From the sequence record NC_041972.1: a stretch of DNA of 64,000 nt; one strand, written 5' to 3'. Shown here piece after piece: positions 5,720 through 61,413 of this stretch; within the stretch, counting starts at the first letter, position 1, and each line of letters starts with the position of its first letter. A program made the translations under genes and the position numbers. Below the pieces are notes generated by a model. It saw only the letters and a program-made list of their open reading frames with translations. It had not been told where the DNA came from and made no database searches.

Positions 5720-7336
5720 ATGCGGTCAGCATTACTACCTTTTAACATTAAGATTACTGACTCCAAGCAGATCCCCTGGAGAATGATGCGACCCGTTACG
5801 TCGCTCGATATTTACGACGGCCTAACCACTGAGCTGAACGATAACGGTCTGTACTCAATTCCCATTTTTGGACGCGTTGGATCGGAAGAACGTGATGAGC
5901 GATTTAGCTACATCCACATCAAGTGCGCCGTGTTCCATCCTGATATCTTCCGGGCACTGACTGCATTAAAGCAGATGTACGCAGGGATTCTCTCCGGTAA
6001 CGTGTACGCGACATGGAGCGAGGAAGAGAAGGACTTCATAAAATCTACCCCGCTTGATGGCGACACCGGTTTTTCCTTCTTTGTTAAACATTGGAAAAGC
6101 ATAGAATTTAAGCAGACTGGCTCGCCGGCCCGTAGCGACAAGATCGCCCTGGTCGAGAAGTTCAAGGATGTGGCCCTCTATCGTAACATCCTGGTCTCAC
6201 CAGCAGGTATCCGTGAAATCCAGATTGATGAGCGCGGGCGCACCATCGAGAACGAAGTCAACTCCCTGTACCGTAAGTTATTGTCAGCCGCGAACACCAT
6301 CACTGATGATCCTTCTGCCGCCGATACCTCACTGTATGACTCGGTGCGTTGGTCATTACAGAACCGCTTCAATGAGATCTACAAAAGTTACGCGGACATG
6401 CTGGAAGGTAAACGCGGGATCTTACAACAGAAGTGGGGTCGTCGTCGTATCTTCAACGGCACCCGAAACGTCATCACGGCCGCCCCTATCGGCACAGCCA
6501 CCCTCGGTGCGTTAAACTCCCCGCACATGAACGACACCCAGATCGGTCTGCATGAGCTGGCTCGTGGCGCATTGCCATTGACCATCCATGGTTTATTGAA
6601 TGGTTGGCTGAAGCATGTCTTTAATGACGGGGCGCGGATTCAGGTCATCAACCCGAAGACCCTGAAACAGGAGTCGGTGGAAGTCGACATCCCGACCGTC
6701 ACCAAGTGGACGACCCAGGAAGGCCTGGAGAAGCTTATCGCGGGCTTTAAAGATGTGACGTTGCGTAACAAGCCGATCACCATCCAAGGCCGCTACATCG
6801 GTCTGGTGTACGCTGACAACGATCATTTCCGGGTGTTCGGGGATATCGATGAATTACCTGCTTCGTTTAATCGCGAGCTGGTTCATCCGATGACCTACAC
6901 CGAGTTACTGTACCTGTGTTTGTACCAACGCTGGAACACTCTTTATATGCTGGTTACTCGTTACCCCATTACGGGTATGGGGTCGGTATATCAGACCAAA
7001 GCGTTTGTGCGCACAACCATCAAATCCAGCGTGAAGATCGAACTCGATGCCGAATGGAAACCCATTCCTGGCGCGTACGCTACCGCCTTCCCGATTCACG
7101 ATCGCTTTGCTGAGTTCATGGATTCGCTTTCAGTTCACCCCAGCCGCCTTGGCTTGCTCGGTGGTGACTACGACGGCGACACCATGTCAGCAACCATCCT
7201 GCTCGGTGACGATGTCCTGCGGGAATGTGCGATGTTGCTCTCACGGCGTGAATCGTACATTACCGGCCGCGGTGAGTTCTTGATCGATGTCACCAATGAA
7301 ACCTTGGACTTTACCCTCAAGGCGCTGACTTCTTAA
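5720..7336 (+). CDS. Virion RNA polymerase beta' subunit (catalytic fragment, phiKZ gp180-like)
   Basis: C-terminal LGGDYDGDTM (DxDGD Mg-binding motif), GRRRIFNGTRNVIT and N-terminal GLYSIPIFG beta'-like motifs. ATG at 5720 follows an AAGGA SD; the track starts at TTG 5696. Confidence 0.93.
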   Translation: MRSALLPFNIKITDSKQIPWRMMRPVTSLDIYDGLTTELNDNGLYSIPIFGRVGSEERDERFSYIHIKCAVFHPDIFRALTALKQMYAGILSGNVYATWSEEEKDFIKSTPLDGDTGFSFFVKHWKSIEFKQTGSPARSDKIALVEKFKDVALYRNILVSPAGIREIQIDERGRTIENEVNSLYRKLLSAANTITDDPSAADTSLYDSVRWSLQNRFNEIYKSYADMLEGKRGILQQKWGRRRIFNGTRNVITAAPIGTATLGALNSPHMNDTQIGLHELARGALPLTIHGLLNGWLKHVFNDGARIQVINPKTLKQESVEVDIPTVTKWTTQEGLEKLIAGFKDVTLRNKPITIQGRYIGLVYADNDHFRVFGDIDELPASFNRELVHPMTYTELLYLCLYQRWNTLYMLVTRYPITGMGSVYQTKAFVRTTIKSSVKIELDAEWKPIPGAYATAFPIHDRFAEFMDSLSVHPSRLGLLGGDYDGDTMSATILLGDDVLRECAMLLSRRESYITGRGEFLIDVTNETLDFTLKALTS

Positions 7337-17458: not shown

Positions 17459-17467
17459 CTATATTAC
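17459..17467 (+). promoter_or_regulatory. Early-promoter-like motif CTATATTAC
   Basis: Matches the TATATTAC early promoter core known from phiKZ. Its context is nearly identical to the copy at 59200 (TTCAAAAAAAT.A.A...CTATATTAC..ATGTG). Confidence 0.7.
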
Positions 17468-44723: not shown

Positions 44724-44789
44724 TCTGTAGGTCGCAGGTTCGATTCCTGTCGGGGTGAAACCCGTAGCTCAGTCGGTTAGAGCAGCAGA
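44724..44789 (+). ncRNA. Circularly permuted tRNA-like element (not a decoding tRNA)
   Basis: TCTGT-AGGTC-GCAGG-TTCGATT-CCTGT-CGGG-GTGAAA-CCCG-TA-GCTC-AGTCGGTTA-GAGC-A-GCAGA: anticodon stem 3' strand, variable loop, T arm, capped acceptor, D arm, anticodon stem 5' strand. Confidence 0.85.
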
Positions 44790-44930: not shown

Positions 44931-45101
44931 ATCTACACTCCCTGATGACTGTGTTCGTCGGGCTATAACGCTAAAACCTTTTAAACAAATCCTGGGTATT
45001 CCTCCGCTGTGAGGATGGGTAATGTGGAGTGTGGTCTGCCACGTATCGCCGCCAGGCTGTCTTGCGGAGACAAGTCTTTCCCTTTTGCAATAGGTGACCT
45101 A

Positions 45102-45272
45102 ATGACAGGCACTGCATCAATGATCATTGAGCAACCACAACCGGAATTCAATATCCCGTTGAGGTCGCCTTATCCTACCCTTCATGACGTAAGGTTTTCT
45201 ATGTTCCCTGTTATGGGTGAACCTGAGAACGAAGGGTTCGAACAAGATTCAGAAACTGACGCATTACATTGA
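45102..45272 (+). CDS. Small hypothetical protein, 56 aa
   Basis: AGGTG SD before ATG 45102; the track's longer version overlaps the ncRNA. Confidence 0.5.
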   Translation: MTGTASMIIEQPQPEFNIPLRSPYPTLHDVRFSMFPVMGEPENEGFEQDSETDALH

Positions 45273-45313
45273 GGAGATTCAATCGCGCAGGTTCTTAACC
45301 GACTAAAGCCAGG

Positions 45314-45541
45314 GTGACTTGTGTTATCTTGGTAAAAGGTGAACGCGTCGTTACAGCGCATACGACTGAATGGGCCGATCCCCCCTTCGGAGTAATATTA
45401 GCCCAGATCCATTGCACACCAATAAGTCAATGGCTAGCCAGACACACAAAAAACTATTATGCTTCGACAGATGGTAGGTGCCTGATTACTACAATTCGAT
45501 TCGATACCTCAACTAAAAGGCGGACACAAGGGCCGTTATGA
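45314..45541 (+). CDS. Possible small hypothetical protein, 75 aa
   Basis: GTG start with weak SD; otherwise unsupported. Confidence 0.3.
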   Translation: MTCVILVKGERVVTAHTTEWADPPFGVILAQIHCTPISQWLARHTKNYYASTDGRCLITTIRFDTSTKRRTQGPL

Positions 45542-45878
45542 GTGAAGCACCAGGAAACTATACCTTGGTAAGGCCCCAGGCTTTTTATCCTTACCAAGGT
45601 TCTCTTTCTTTTACTACCTGATAATGGGTGGATGCCTTAGTCACCTTTCTTTCACAGAGGCAACAACCTAAGGCGTCTGCCCGCCCTATAACCCGAGTCG
45701 TCTAGCGACAAGACACCGTCAGACCCATTTGGTAACAGCCTAACTTACCTGTTACCCAACCTATGACGGAAACAGGTGGTTCAACTCCACCTCTTGGGTC
45801 TTAGGTATTGGCTTAGGCAAACTCCGTCGCGGCTTTACCCTCAATAGGCTGCGTTGCGTAAGTCAGTACCGTGCTGTG

Positions 45879-46033
45879 CGTCGTACTCCCTGATGAGGCG
45901 CCCGACGTTAAAAGGCACGAAACGGGGACAGAGGATACTCCATCGGTGATTGCAATCAACCACGCTGGGGTTTATACAGGCACTTGAGAGACACGCTGGT
46001 TTCTCGTTGCCTGTCCCTTTGTCCCGTCGGAGT
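45879..46033 (+). ncRNA. Type I hammerhead ribozyme
   Basis: CUGAUGA (45890-45896), stem II G...C, GAAA (45919-45922), stem III ACGGG(G)ACAGAGG/CCUUUGUCCCGU, cleavage triplet GUC (46026-46028), stem I ACUCC/GGAGU. Confidence 0.8.
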
Positions 46034-46435
46034 CCCTTGCGTTCCTGGAGGGATGACACCGCGTTAAGACTGATCCCCTTAACGAAGTTGCAATAGCCGG
46101 GGGTGATTCTTGCAAAGGTTACTCACAGCAGACTGCCTCCGCCAATTGCGGATGGCTTAGGCCCTCAGTCCGTCAGGAAGTTGTCGTTGAATAAGTGACA
46201 GCTGGACTAGGGTTGCATTATAACCCGGCAAGTGTGCAGCCTGTTTTTTCTTCATGTGTACCTGAACCGGTTCAGGAGCCTACAGATGAGGGAACGACGG
46301 GAAGCATATTGCTACCGATCATTTGCTGTGTGACCGGGCCAAGGATGGCATATACCGGAACCAGTAACCGTATTCAGCGCAGGTGCGCTTTCTCTTCCTT
46401 ATCTTGTGGTTAAACCGCGCCTGTCTGGATCATAT

Positions 46436-46466
46436 GTGCCGGGGTCACACCTGGCGCTTATGCCGT
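46436..46466 (+). terminator. Hairpin + TTATGCCG
   Basis: GTGCCGGG-GTCACA-CCTGGCGC then TTATGCCGTC; closes the RNA island. Confidence 0.65.
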
Positions 46467-46540
46467 CTGAGTTGTATCCTTTTTTACTCCTACATTACGA
46501 AGCTGATATACCCATCAATTCAATTTAAAGGAGTTTAGTT

Positions 46541-46963
46541 ATGAAGAACGTTACTATTGCTATTGGTCGTAATCCGCTGTCCAACCAGAAATGGATTCTG
46601 GATCAGATCGTGAGTCTGGTGAAGTCCGGTAAGTCCGACATCTTCATCGTCAATACCGACTCACGGGTTTCCACTGCGGTACTCAATGCCTTGAAAGAGT
46701 ATACGAAGGATGATGCGGAATACACTCGCTTGGTTGCTGAGAACGGTGTCATGTTCCACACAACCGAGACCGAAGACCTGCAAACGCTGGATGATGCTAA
46801 GATGAACAGCCGGTCGGCGATTCTGGCCAACATGCTGTTCAGCCTGCCATTGGTCAAACAGTGTCGTGATCTGGCGCGTCATCACGTCCCGGTCTTTGTG
46901 AGTGCCACACCTGCCATGTCTGGTAAGGTGCCGGCTTCCGCCCATACCAAGTTCCTCGATTAA
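46541..46963 (+). CDS. Hypothetical protein, 140 aa
   Basis: AAGGAG SD; CTACATTAC motif at 46490. Confidence 0.85.
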   Translation: MKNVTIAIGRNPLSNQKWILDQIVSLVKSGKSDIFIVNTDSRVSTAVLNALKEYTKDDAEYTRLVAENGVMFHTTETEDLQTLDDAKMNSRSAILANMLFSLPLVKQCRDLARHHVPVFVSATPAMSGKVPASAHTKFLD

Positions 46964-49661: not shown

Positions 49662-50636
49662 ATGTCAAAACGTTTAACCCGCATCTACGCTTGTGGCGGT
49701 GCTGCCATCAACATCACCGCGGCGCAGAAGGACCAGCACGATCAACTGGGCTTCTCTGACCTCAGCGTATCACGTATCGATACTTCGGATAAGAACATCA
49801 AACCAGGCATGTCACCGAACAGCGTCTACATCCTGGAAAACGCAGACGGTTCTGGTAAAGAGCGTAAGCACAACTACAAAGCGATCGTGGCCTCACTCGA
49901 ACAGATCCTGGCGATGCACAAACCGGGCGATTACAACATCGTCATGATGTCAGCCTCAGGCGGTTCTGGTTCGGTCATCGGTCCGGTAATCATTGGCGAA
50001 CTGCTGAAGCGTAAGATCCCAGTGGTTGCGCTGGTTGTGGGTACCATCGGTTCTGAAACTGAAACGCAGAACTCCATCAATACCCTGAAGTCCCTGGCCG
50101 GTGTCTCTGAAGCTCAGAAAGCCCCACTGGTGATGTCATACTTCCCGGTGAACCAGCACTTCGATCAGCGTGAAGTGGACAAGCAAGTCCTGACCACCAT
50201 GACGCTGTTGCTCAACCTGTTCGACTCGAAGAACATCGAAATCGATTACAAAGATATCGTGAACTTCCTGAACTACACCAACATCCGTAACACCCGCCCT
50301 GGCCTGGTTGGCCTCGAAACGTACAACGACGACGAACTGCAGACCATCGCTGGTACCTCGCCGTTGTCCATGGCGTCAGTGTTCAAAGATGATAACCGTC
50401 CGTTCCTGCCGGTTACCCCGGACTACCATGCCACCGGTACCCGTGACCAGGACATGAAAGATGAGCGTATGCAGTTCAATGCGCACTATGTCATTACCTC
50501 GGCGCCGGTTAAAATGGCGTTTGAAGATCTGAACAAACGTATGAAGCAGATCACTGATCAGCAACATACTCGCGGCCAGAACTTCAACCTGCTGGGTGAT
50601 GGCGACCAGGGTGACGATAACGGGATGTTCCTGTAA
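49662..50636 (+). CDS. phuZ: Phage tubulin PhuZ
   Basis: IYACGGAAINI (T1 loop), SGGSGSVIG (tubulin signature), acidic C-terminal DDNGMFL tail. Confidence 0.95.
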   Translation: MSKRLTRIYACGGAAINITAAQKDQHDQLGFSDLSVSRIDTSDKNIKPGMSPNSVYILENADGSGKERKHNYKAIVASLEQILAMHKPGDYNIVMMSASGGSGSVIGPVIIGELLKRKIPVVALVVGTIGSETETQNSINTLKSLAGVSEAQKAPLVMSYFPVNQHFDQREVDKQVLTTMTLLLNLFDSKNIEIDYKDIVNFLNYTNIRNTRPGLVGLETYNDDELQTIAGTSPLSMASVFKDDNRPFLPVTPDYHATGTRDQDMKDERMQFNAHYVITSAPVKMAFEDLNKRMKQITDQQHTRGQNFNLLGDGDQGDDNGMFL

Positions 50637-59277: not shown

Positions 59278-61413
59278 ATGAAAACTCCTGAAGGCGAAAA
59301 CAAGGCACAGGGTCAGCAGCCATCTGACCAGCAGCAGCCTAACAATTCGGCAATGGGTGATGCGCTACTACAAGCGCAACAGAGGCAGAGTCAGCAGCCA
59401 CAGCAGCAGCAAACTCCGCCTCAACAAGCGCCGCAGTCAGCACCTCAACCAGTGCAAGCAGCAACCCAGCAACAGCAACACACCCCACAATTTCATCAGA
59501 CTGCAGGTAACAGCACCGTGAACAACACAACTAACAACACCAACACCGAACAACAGCAGCCGCGTCAGTCACGCATTTACGGCATGAACGAACGCCGTTC
59601 TCGTATCTTCGACGCGACCGCGTTTGGTGAAAACTTTAAGATCGCGCTGGAAGCGACCAAAGAAGTGCTGGAAGGCTATGAAGATAAAGGTTTCAACAAA
59701 TCTTTCTTCCTGGTTCCCGTTGCTGATGCAACCCTGCACTGCAATGGCCTGGCGTATGCGTCTGTGTTCAACTTCGGCGGCAGCACCAAAGCAATCGTCT
59801 ATACCCTGATGCTGGAAAACACCGGCTCGCCACTGAAACCACAGCGCGGTAACGATCCACTGACGGGCGAACCGTTTGAGATCCCACGCATGACCGGTTC
59901 TCAGTACGACAACACCTACTGGGCTCGTGTAGCACAGCTGGTCGCGCACCGTGTTGGTAACAACGCAGAAGTGCTGGATGCTGGCGCCTGTGTGGTGCAC
60001 GCTGAGATGAAGTGGGACGACAAGTCTGCGATCAAACAGCTGCTGAACAACGCAGAAAACGCCACCATGGCGTATGCGAACAGCCTGTCTGGTTACCGTA
60101 TCGAACCACCATTCAACATCGCGCAGGAAGTGGACCCGAACATCGACCGCATCACCGCGGGCTTTAACTTCAATCCACAGCCGCTGTTCACTGTTGATGG
60201 TCAGCCGATCCGTAACGACGTCGAAGTGAAACTGTCTGCTTACGCAGAAGGCGCAGGCCAGGTTCAGACCACCGAAGCCATCACCACCGTGAACGGCTAT
60301 GTTGAGCTGATCGCTGCACCGCAGCAGCAGATGGGTTATCAGCAGCAGATGATGATGGGTATGAACCCGCAGCAGGCGATGCAGTTCTACCGTCGCTTCT
60401 ACCCGCAGTTCACCATCACTTCAACTGGTACCGGTATCTCTAACGCACAGGGTCCTGAGTTCCAGCTGCTGGCGCTGTTCGCTGCTTCACTGATTGGTGA
60501 AAACAGCAACTGGCACCATGCGTTTGCGCCGAAGATGGTAAACGGTGTCGATATCAACGATATCGGTGCGATCAACTACGAACTGAAAATGGGTCTGGAA
60601 AGCCCAGATGACCGTCCGAAGAAGATCATCACCAAAGACCACAGCTTCACCACGCAGGCTCTGCATCAGCTGCTGTACACCGCATGCCACGAATCCATGT
60701 CAATCGCGATCGACATCGAAGAGACCGGCACGCGTACCTGGGTTAACTCCATGCTGCTTCTGGCTGGCGGTCAACCAAACGGTAATGCTGCAGCACTGAG
60801 CCCACAGGGTCAGCAGGCGCACAAAGCGATCATCCAGGCGGCGAACAACCTGACCAACGGTGAGTTCAGCAAACACTTCACCGATCAGAACCAGCTGATT
60901 GCTGTACGTGACGGTACCCGTATTCAGGGTGGTTTCTACGTCTCTAAAGACAACCATCAGAAAATGGATATCCGTAACGTCGACCTGCTGGCGGTTCTGA
61001 ACTTCGTCGGTGAAACTGATCCGCGTATCGTGGAAGAGTGGAAAATCATCACCAGCTCTACTTCTGGTATGTCTACTCCGAAACGTGTCGCGCTGCGTCA
61101 GCAGAAACTGCAGCAGCTGCTGGGTGAGTCTTTCGTCCTGAAAGCTTACTACGAGCGTGTAGTGATCAACTGGGCATTCATGGATGCTCTGCGTAAAGCA
61201 ATCACTGCAGCAGGCCTGATCGTGCGTCCGGAAAACACCAACATGCAGTACAACGTACAGAGCTACGGCACGCCAATGGCGCAGCTGTACGGCATGCCTA
61301 CCAACATCGGCAGCTCACTGCAGCAGGGCGCTTACGCAACCGACAACCAAGGTCGCGTAGTGAACATGGCAGCGTTCCGTACTGGTGGTGCATTCGGTAC
61401 GTTCAACGGCTAA
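59278..61413 (+). CDS. chmA: Chimallin, major phage nucleus shell protein
   Basis: 711 aa; position between DNA polymerase and nvRNAP beta'; highly biased codons; early promoter upstream; Q-rich N-terminus. Confidence 0.88.
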   Translation: MKTPEGENKAQGQQPSDQQQPNNSAMGDALLQAQQRQSQQPQQQQTPPQQAPQSAPQPVQAATQQQQHTPQFHQTAGNSTVNNTTNNTNTEQQQPRQSRIYGMNERRSRIFDATAFGENFKIALEATKEVLEGYEDKGFNKSFFLVPVADATLHCNGLAYASVFNFGGSTKAIVYTLMLENTGSPLKPQRGNDPLTGEPFEIPRMTGSQYDNTYWARVAQLVAHRVGNNAEVLDAGACVVHAEMKWDDKSAIKQLLNNAENATMAYANSLSGYRIEPPFNIAQEVDPNIDRITAGFNFNPQPLFTVDGQPIRNDVEVKLSAYAEGAGQVQTTEAITTVNGYVELIAAPQQQMGYQQQMMMGMNPQQAMQFYRRFYPQFTITSTGTGISNAQGPEFQLLALFAASLIGENSNWHHAFAPKMVNGVDINDIGAINYELKMGLESPDDRPKKIITKDHSFTTQALHQLLYTACHESMSIAIDIEETGTRTWVNSMLLLAGGQPNGNAAALSPQGQQAHKAIIQAANNLTNGEFSKHFTDQNQLIAVRDGTRIQGGFYVSKDNHQKMDIRNVDLLAVLNFVGETDPRIVEEWKIITSSTSGMSTPKRVALRQQKLQQLLGESFVLKAYYERVVINWAFMDALRKAITAAGLIVRPENTNMQYNVQSYGTPMAQLYGMPTNIGSSLQQGAYATDNQGRVVNMAAFRTGGAFGTFNG

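Follow-up and report, generated by a model that had tools for sequence, protein, structure and literature searches.

A probable type I hammerhead ribozyme of an uncatalogued subfamily within a structured non-coding RNA of the jumbo phage Deimos-Minion

The window, that is, the whole stretch of DNA analysed here, comprises 64,000 nucleotides of record NC_041972.1, and its coordinates are those of the record minus 124000. It corresponds, at 100% identity, to Erwinia phage vB_EamM_Deimos-Minion, an Agricanvirus jumbo phage with a genome of 273 kb. Since the window encodes PhuZ, chimallin and a divergent family B DNA polymerase, Deimos-Minion is taken to be a nucleus-forming jumbo phage. A candidate hammerhead ribozyme sits in an unannotated gap of 1.27 kb between gp208 (45009-45272) and gp209 (46541-46963), and every neighbouring gene, from gp204 through gp213, is on the + strand. 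There are 15 further near-identical Agricanvirus phage records (99.1-100% identity to a 2-kb query). The 156-nt hammerhead element is 100% identical in 16 of 16 Agricanvirus records, while the surrounding 2 kb ranges from 99.1 to 100%, and it is annotated in none of the GenBank records checked. The parts of the ribozyme and two of the genes mentioned are the following:

45879-45883 (+), 5′ strand of the pseudoknot, CGUCG, which pairs with loop II at 45903-45907
45885-45889 (+), 5′ strand of stem I, ACUCC, which pairs with 46029-46033
45890-45896 (+), core residues C3 to A9, CUGAUGA, invariant except for N7
45897-45918 (+), stem II (G-C, G.A, bulged C, GCC/GGC) with the 11-nt loop II CGACGUUAAAA
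45903-45907 (+), CGACG of loop II, 3′ strand of the pseudoknot
45919-45922 (+), core residues G12 A13 A14 A15.1 (GAAA), invariant in every copy
45923-45934 (+), 5′ strand of stem III, which pairs with 46016-46026 and leaves G45924 bulged
45936-45972 (+), hairpin IIIa of the stem III insert, with the conserved sequence CAUCGGYGAUUGMAWAUCAACCACGAUG
45976-46014 (+), hairpin IIIb, with helices 45976-82/46008-14 and 45985-92/45999-46006 and a variable sequence
46016-46028 (+), 3′ strand of stem III, U16.1 (46027) and C17 (46028), with the predicted scissile bond at 46028/46029
46029-46033 (+), 3′ strand of stem I, GGAGU, which would be the 5′-OH end of the 3′ product
49662-50636, PhuZ tubulin
59278-61413, chimallin

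An earlier note on this DNA, made from its letters, had described a type I hammerhead with a large stem III insert and a pseudoknot, and a direct reading of the sequence finds every element that it listed in the place that it gave. The core nucleotides are all present, namely CTGATGA at 45890-45896, GAAA at 45919-45922, the pair G45897-C45918 and GTC at 46026-46028. Thus, the sequence contains C3 U4 G5 A6 N7 G8 A9, G12 A13 A14, the pair A15.1-U16.1 and an H17 that is not G. Stem II is as imperfect as had been said: a mismatch (G45898.A45917) and a bulge (C45899) come ahead of GCC/GGC. It is closed by an 11-nt loop, stem III is closed by an 81-nt insert and stem I is open, which is the arrangement of type I. 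The insert (45935-46015) forms two hairpins of its own, in agreement with the earlier description and with comparative support. Stems I and III both pair, as claimed, but the best register of stem III differs slightly from the one first drawn. In Deimos-Minion and in Erwinia phage AH06, this register consists of A45922-U46027, C45923-G46026, a bulged G45924 and 10 bp between 45925-45934 and 46016-46025; its pair probability in Deimos-Minion is 0.83. A sixth pseudoknot pair, G45878.U45908, is possible. In nested folding, where the pseudoknot is outside the calculation, the active fold has −52.1 kcal/mol versus −55.7 kcal/mol for the minimum free energy (MFE) structure, a gap of 3.6, and stems I and II reach modest pair probabilities.

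A second CTCCCTGATGA is found at 44938-44948 (+). It has no GAAA and no matching stems, it was not found in AH06 or in the metagenomic contig L008, and it is probably there by chance.

Since the motif is short, it could be argued that the match at 45879-46033 also arose by chance, or that its conservation is due to a protein gene, as a minus-strand ORF of 72 aa (45841-46059) overlaps it and hypothetical proteins are annotated nearby in AH06 and Simmy50. The frequency of such matches was estimated with a descriptor that requires CUGANGA, GAAA, UH and a minimum of 4 bp in each of stems I and III, applied to both strands of the 64-kb window. Exactly one match is obtained, at the site described above, while 300 dinucleotide shuffles give 0.037 matches per window, or 0.003 when 5 bp are required in both stems. 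An expectation of 0.003-0.04 matches per window, together with 15 homologous copies that carry compensatory changes, argues against chance. A protein gene is opposed by the stop-free stretches, which differ in frame and position among five relatives, by the indels among these relatives, which are not multiples of three, and by AH06_220, which maps 3′ of the ribozyme and not across the hammerhead. Both explanations are thus scarcely credible.

The Infernal hammerhead models, a check proposed in the earlier note, do not recover the site: no Rfam hammerhead matches in the window, either at the gathering score or at E ≤ 10. In effect, no family member that was searched reaches an Rfam gathering score for a hammerhead, and the relatives give only sub-threshold matches. 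The best of these are to the RAGATH-1 hammerhead (RF03152), with 12.4 bits in a relative versus a gathering score of 56.3, and to Hammerhead_3 (RF00008), with 30.5 bits for the copy of Salmonella phage SA002 and 28.4 for that of Erwinia phage pEa37 versus a gathering score of 48.5. Because the Hammerhead_3 model has another topology and the ribozyme here is type I, its matches lend no support to a type III assignment. Rfam probably misses the element because of its long loop II, its bulge and the insert in stem III. A covariance model was also built from three compact copies, all of them from other contigs and with the apex of stem III trimmed. It gives a single match in the window, at 45879, with 40.3 bits and an E-value of about 1e-10, and it recovers all family members within the loci searched. 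At the Deimos-Minion site, this model mis-threads the 3′ strands owing to the 81-nt insert. As it is unable to bridge the insert, it tests membership in the family at the level of sequence and not the long-range stems.

The same hammerhead occurs in 15 distinct sequences, which comprise three jumbo-phage lineages and six compact copies from viral or metagenome contigs. Over the region, Erwinia phage AH06 shows 82% identity and keeps every core block. In three metagenomic jumbo-phage contigs (L008-L010), the ribozyme is at the same place and the gp209 homologues have 73-75% amino acid identity. It is also carried by more distant phages, namely Salmonella phage vB_SalM_SA002 and Erwinia phage pEa_SNUABM_37/48, in which gp209 is about 41-43% identical. 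In this SA002 group, the ribozyme has a 6-bp pseudoknot (AAGUCG/CGACUU), a clean 5-bp stem II, an insert of 57 nt and an 11-bp stem III with one mismatch. Pattern scans of IMG/VR and metagenomes yielded the compact copies, which have no insert (L003, L014, L016, L027, L028 and L029), and pattern scans also gave two more SA002-like copies (L026 and L030). One pattern scan of genome contigs found no further copy, and IMG/VR gave no additional relatives of gp209. A pattern match in a Tepidisphaeraceae MAG is a chance match and is rejected by the compact-copy covariance model.

The catalytic core never changes across the 15 sequences. Variation at N7 is limited to U, A and C (A in L008) and at H17 to C, U and A (U in L009 and L010), with G never seen at H17, while the pairs A15.1-U16.1 and G10.1-C11.1 are invariant. 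Stem I measures 5 bp in Deimos-Minion. Its length is 4-5 bp among the five Agricanvirus-like sequences but falls to 2-4 bp in L026 and the SA002 group; in the compact copies its sequence is unrelated and AU-rich, yet it still pairs. The base of stem III in L008-L010 is a run of 9-13 bp without mismatch, which covaries. At position 10.2-11.2, the G.A appears only in the Deimos group, whereas the other Agricanvirus-like and the compact copies tabulated have U-A. For these comparisons across the family, the pair tables were made by explicit parsing; MAFFT is unable to align compact with inserted copies.

The pairing of loop II with the 5′ flank, which the earlier note had predicted, is borne out by this comparison. 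It amounts to five of five or six of six base pairs in every copy checked, and four of its six positions change on both sides with the pairing kept. For instance, the pseudoknot is CGUCU/AGACG in AH06 and CGUCG/CGACG in Deimos-Minion, so that one position shows three types of pair: G-C, U-A in AH06 and C-G in L003. Other exchanges are U-A to C-G in L014, and C-G to A-U and G.U to A-U in the SA002 group. In the five Agricanvirus-like jumbo-phage sequences, 94% of the cells of a table of 40 pairs, pseudoknot included, are paired, versus 33-51% when the partners are slid, and double changes are seen in 7 of the 40 pairs (4 pairs in stem III). Hairpin IIIa has 14 pairs, with 93% of cells paired and 2 double-change pairs, and a counterpart of hairpin IIIb can be drawn in L008 and L009 when read by eye. 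Thus, a three-helix junction with its core-adjacent pairs (1.1-2.1, 10.1-11.1 and 15.1-16.1) and with covariation is present. The type I topology is likewise borne out by the comparative evidence, and the relatives support the predicted cleavage after C46028.

The catalytic core is ordinary, and what is new here is the unusual periphery and context. Stem II is weak in the Deimos group, where the G.A mismatch stands beside a bulge. For this reason, it might be thought that the element is a hammerhead-shaped relic that has lost cleavage in the Deimos group and is kept as a structural module of a larger RNA. The G.A at 10.2-11.2, where the tabulated copies have U-A, the bulged C and the failure of Rfam to match even at E ≤ 10 would all fit such a relic. 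By contrast, nothing is missing from the core, the cleavage-site triplet or the pseudoknot, all of which are 100% conserved in 16 records. Across lineages, the rules of hammerheads are obeyed exactly, with N7 free and H17 never G, which a scaffold would not need. Furthermore, in natural hammerheads stem II is often as short as 2 bp (PMC3088659). Loss of activity is thus unlikely. It is considered with a probability of roughly 0.8, on the strength of sequence comparison, that 45879-46033 (+) encodes a functional type I hammerhead of an uncatalogued phage-borne subfamily; the residual doubt about full activity in Deimos-Minion comes mainly from the G.A at 10.2-11.2 in the Deimos group. The short stem I, the sub-threshold Rfam scores throughout the family and the 3.6 kcal/mol by which the active fold trails the MFE in nested folding also count against it.

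It had also been suggested that cleavage may be switchable, on account of a second TGTCCC. This sequence is indeed present, at 46012-46017, and an RNA switch could be imagined in which GGGGACAG (45924-31) pairs with the second CTGTCCC (46011-17) and traps an inactive fold, so that cleavage would be regulated. In the Deimos group a complementarity of 7 bp is present, and AH06 has G/C-rich repeats that would likewise permit slipped pairings. Nevertheless, neither AH06 nor L008-L010 nor the SA002 group has the second TGTCCC, which is thus restricted to the Deimos group. Constraining the fold to the alternative pairing gives −48.6 versus −55.7 kcal/mol for the MFE, which is 7 kcal/mol worse, and the probability of this pairing in the Deimos ensemble is about zero. 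In addition, 46016-17 are needed for the active stem III. The family has no conserved, mutually exclusive alternative pairing of the kind expected for a riboswitch-like element, and the suggestion is not supported. A switch is very unlikely, and cleavage is most likely constitutive.

The ribozyme is embedded in a larger RNA, structured and conserved, that runs over about 790 nt between 45692 and about 46475 (+). Among the five Agricanvirus-like sequences, this region shows block-wise conservation, non-triplet indels and no shared ORF. Its other parts are the following:

45692-45798 (+), tRNA-like cloverleaf, predicted by RNAalifold unprompted
45692-97/45793-98 (+), acceptor stem of the cloverleaf
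45700-03/45711-14 (+), D arm of the cloverleaf
45716-21/45764-69 plus 45731-38/45749-56 (+), long ‘anticodon’ arm of the cloverleaf, with a conserved AACUUAC loop motif
45774-79/45787-92 (+), T arm of the cloverleaf, with loop UUCAACU
45808-45867 (+), hairpin H2, between cloverleaf and hammerhead, with the conserved apical loop CUUYACCCUCA
46034-46475 (+), structured 3′ domain, with 151 predicted pairs, 22 of them with double changes
46431-46462 (+), conserved terminal hairpin at the end of the 3′ domain

The cloverleaf is common to all three jumbo-phage lineages. Pairing is 100% in its acceptor, D, T and basal ‘anticodon’ helices, where 5 pairs show double changes, and in SA002 and pEa37 the acceptor stem has 2 compensatory pairs; in SA002, the cloverleaf is then followed by ACCA. 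Neither the Rfam tRNA model nor ARAGORN with its default settings gives a match at the cloverleaf, and ARAGORN calls it only at relaxed (intron) settings, with inconsistent anticodons. It lacks the hallmarks of a tRNA, that is, a 7-nt anticodon loop with U33 and a purine at 37 and recognition by tRNA finders. Because the anticodon arm is about 56 nt long, with a 10-nt loop, and the structure is found only at relaxed settings, it is regarded as tRNA-like and not as a true tRNA. The apical helix of H2 (45827-36/45845-54) contains 4 pairs with double changes, and the region of the terminal hairpin also matches SA002, with compensating differences when read from the sequence. Rfam finds no match to another ribozyme class, a group I or II intron, GOLLD, ROOL or tmRNA in the RNA region. 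A coding reading of the region was discarded, as there is no conserved ORF and the frames are inconsistent among relatives.

Some further observations were made in and around this RNA. The H2 apical loop YACCCUC (45838-45846) is complementary to GRGGGUG (46099-46105) in four of five relatives, and the only changes are compatible with wobble pairing; such a contact with the 3′ domain, should it be real, could hold both cleavage products together. The new 5′ end GGAGU (46029-33) could pair with 46106-10, with one compensatory change. Upstream, about 250 nt (45300-45545, +) resemble AH06 in the Deimos group and overlap a 75-aa GTG ORF; the counterpart in AH06 is upstream of an extra gene, AH06_219 (L002 3970-4488). 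This gene, directly upstream of the RNA in AH06, encodes a protein of 172 aa (phrog_2586) in which there is a P-loop-like GKT motif. An AH06_219-like coding sequence also ends just 5′ of the RNA in L004 and L008-L010, and in its place the cultured Deimos-group phages have a terminator-like hairpin (45564-45600). Finally, a YrlA-like (Y RNA-like) permuted tRNA-like module is located at 44726-44789 (+), between gp207 and gp208. Its match to RF02553 has 44.5 bits and an E-value of 2e-8 in a 1.2-kb search, which is below the gathering score of 69 and covers model positions 23-87 only; AH06 (37.3 bits) and L008 (43.6 bits) give sub-threshold Rfam YrlA matches as well. A scan of 19 proteins from the window and one from AH06 revealed no Ro60 or RtcB gene.

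Directly after the terminal hairpin, there is a further element upstream of gp209:

46483-46498 (+), phiKZ/EL-type promoter-like motif TTTACTCCTACATTAC, upstream of gp209 (46541-46963)

This motif is invariant in five relatives and, as a 16-mer, unique in the window. The 8-mer TAYATTAC fits the phiKZ/EL promoter type, for which the consensus is that of Table 2 in PMC7058600. It has 6 matches in the window versus 2.2 expected: TACATTAC at 46491 (+) and TATATTAC at 17460, 37810, 39100 and 59201 (+), all five with A/T-rich upstream sequence, and a sixth match, at 7256, without it. It was also observed that ACUCCU (46486-91) can pair with the Shine-Dalgarno (SD) AGGAGU of gp209 (46529-34), both being invariant in five relatives. 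As this anti-SD overlaps the promoter motif, it is possibly present only in read-through transcripts.

In view of these neighbours, the ribozyme could mainly serve gene expression: a cut in a read-through transcript would give the gp209-gp213 mRNA a 5′-OH end, or would alter the accessibility of the gp209 ribosome-binding site. The shared + strand from gp204 to gp213 and the invariance of the anti-SD/SD pairing are consistent with this, and two compact copies (L003 and L016) lie 240-400 nt 5′ of a gene. Phage hammerheads are thought to process polycistronic RNAs (PMC3088659). By contrast, the hairpin (46431-62) and the promoter motif (46483-98) intervene, and gp209 is probably started independently. 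The RNA of SA002 is separated from the gp209 homologue by three other genes. Moreover, about 445 nt of covarying structure after the cut is beyond the needs of a leader. Since the hairpin and the promoter intervene and the gene order of SA002 differs, a role in the gp209 operon is the weaker alternative, conceivable but doubtful.

A link with tRNA genes or tRNA-like structures is recurrent in this subfamily, as three of the compact copies sit 3′ of tRNA genes. One of them, in L003 (12443-12506, −), adjoins tRNA-Arg(tct); another, in L027 (856-925, +), adjoins tRNA-Leu(taa); and the third, in L029 (8863-8927, +), follows tRNA-Met. L029 has a cluster of nine tRNAs. The distances past the tRNA-Arg, tRNA-Leu and tRNA-Met genes are 0, 0 and 16 nt, respectively. 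The literature searched gave no report of hammerheads in jumbo phages or beside phage tRNAs.

For the processing of the RNA itself, the following mechanism may be proposed. The RNA of about 790 nt would probably be co-transcribed with the upstream genes. The first five bases of loop II would pair with five bases located one nucleotide upstream of stem I, and this pseudoknot would keep stems I and II parallel, which is a known route to fast cleavage. Co-transcriptional transesterification after C46028 would then leave a 2′,3′-cyclic phosphate on C46028 and a 5′-OH on G46029. The 5′ piece, of about 337 nt, would contain the cloverleaf, H2 and the ribozyme and end in the 2′,3′-cyclic phosphate, whereas the 3′ piece, structured and of about 445 nt, would start with the 5′-OH. 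At the cloverleaf, the 5′ end may be set by RNase P. Both tailing and 3′ exonucleases are stopped by a cyclic phosphate, and RNase E, which is stimulated by a 5′-monophosphate, is poorly activated by a 5′-OH; judging from this end chemistry, both products may therefore be relatively protected. Processing of this RNA island by the ribozyme, as the earlier note had it, is thus plausible.

It is worth considering what the element would mean if active. The hammerhead recurs beside tRNA genes or tRNA-like structures in unrelated phages and, in the chimallin-encoding jumbo phages, is part of the RNA of about 790 nt. Ribozyme processing linked to tRNAs, so far a matter of HDV-like theta ribozymes, would extend to the hammerhead class and to enterobacterial phages. 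The cut at 46028/46029 would be a precise handle for mapping or perturbing a candidate non-coding RNA of large size, in phages whose transcription is kept apart from the host cytoplasm. In addition, the copies would provide seed sequences for a covariance model able to find hammerheads that current libraries miss. More tentatively, the cloverleaf, the hammerhead and the 3′ domain of 445 nt, perhaps with the YrlA-like RNA, may represent a new class of phage RNA, large and structured, whose typical carriers are the nucleus-forming jumbo phages of enterobacteria. Its tRNA-associated hammerhead would give host-RNase-independent processing, as in theta ribozymes but with the cut on the far side of the ribozyme. 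Through their 2′,3′-cyclic phosphate and 5′-OH ends, the RNAs could gain protection, the two halves could stay associated, or the products could enter RtcB/Ro-type repair of RNA or tRNA mimicry during infection. This broader proposal is speculative and cannot be given more than limited credence.

The closest known systems are the type I pseudoknot hammerheads described by Perreault et al. in 2011 (PMC3088659), which have the same core, the same junction of three helices and the same cut after H17. A pseudoknot that joins stem I to stem II is well established as an activating contact, and hammerheads occur commonly in the transcripts of phages (PMC3088659). The setting, intergenic in phages or prophages, and the activating contact, made by Watson-Crick pairs rather than between loops, are likewise shared. 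Unlike these hammerheads, that of Deimos-Minion pairs loop II with the single-stranded 5′ flank, at one nucleotide's distance from a very short stem I; its loop II is the characteristic CGACNUUAAAN; the jumbo-phage copies have a conserved, branched stem III insert of 57-85 nt; and all of the Rfam hammerhead models remain below threshold. Mimicry of tRNA within a non-coding RNA is also found in the YrlA Y RNAs (PMC4201824), and the YrlA-like module lies 1.1 kb upstream. Nevertheless, the cloverleaf on the hammerhead side has a normal tRNA topology, an elongated anticodon arm and no match to the YrlA model.

Theta ribozymes, which are minimal HDV-like ribozymes, are also self-cleaving and are located beside tRNA genes in Caudoviricetes, and a ribozyme-based, RNase-independent processing of transcripts has been proposed for them in an article that does not mention hammerheads (PMC10879173). 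Theta ribozymes have been described from gut phages of Bacteroidota and Bacillota (PMC10879173), whereas the copies of the present family come from enterobacterial jumbo phages and environmental contigs. The hammerhead subfamily resembles them in lying just 3′ of tRNA or tRNA-like genes but belongs to a different fold and family. The cut made by HDV-like ribozymes falls at their own 5′ edge, beside the tRNA, whereas that of a type I hammerhead falls on its 3′ side. Consequently, the whole ribozyme would stay on the tRNA or tRNA-like piece.
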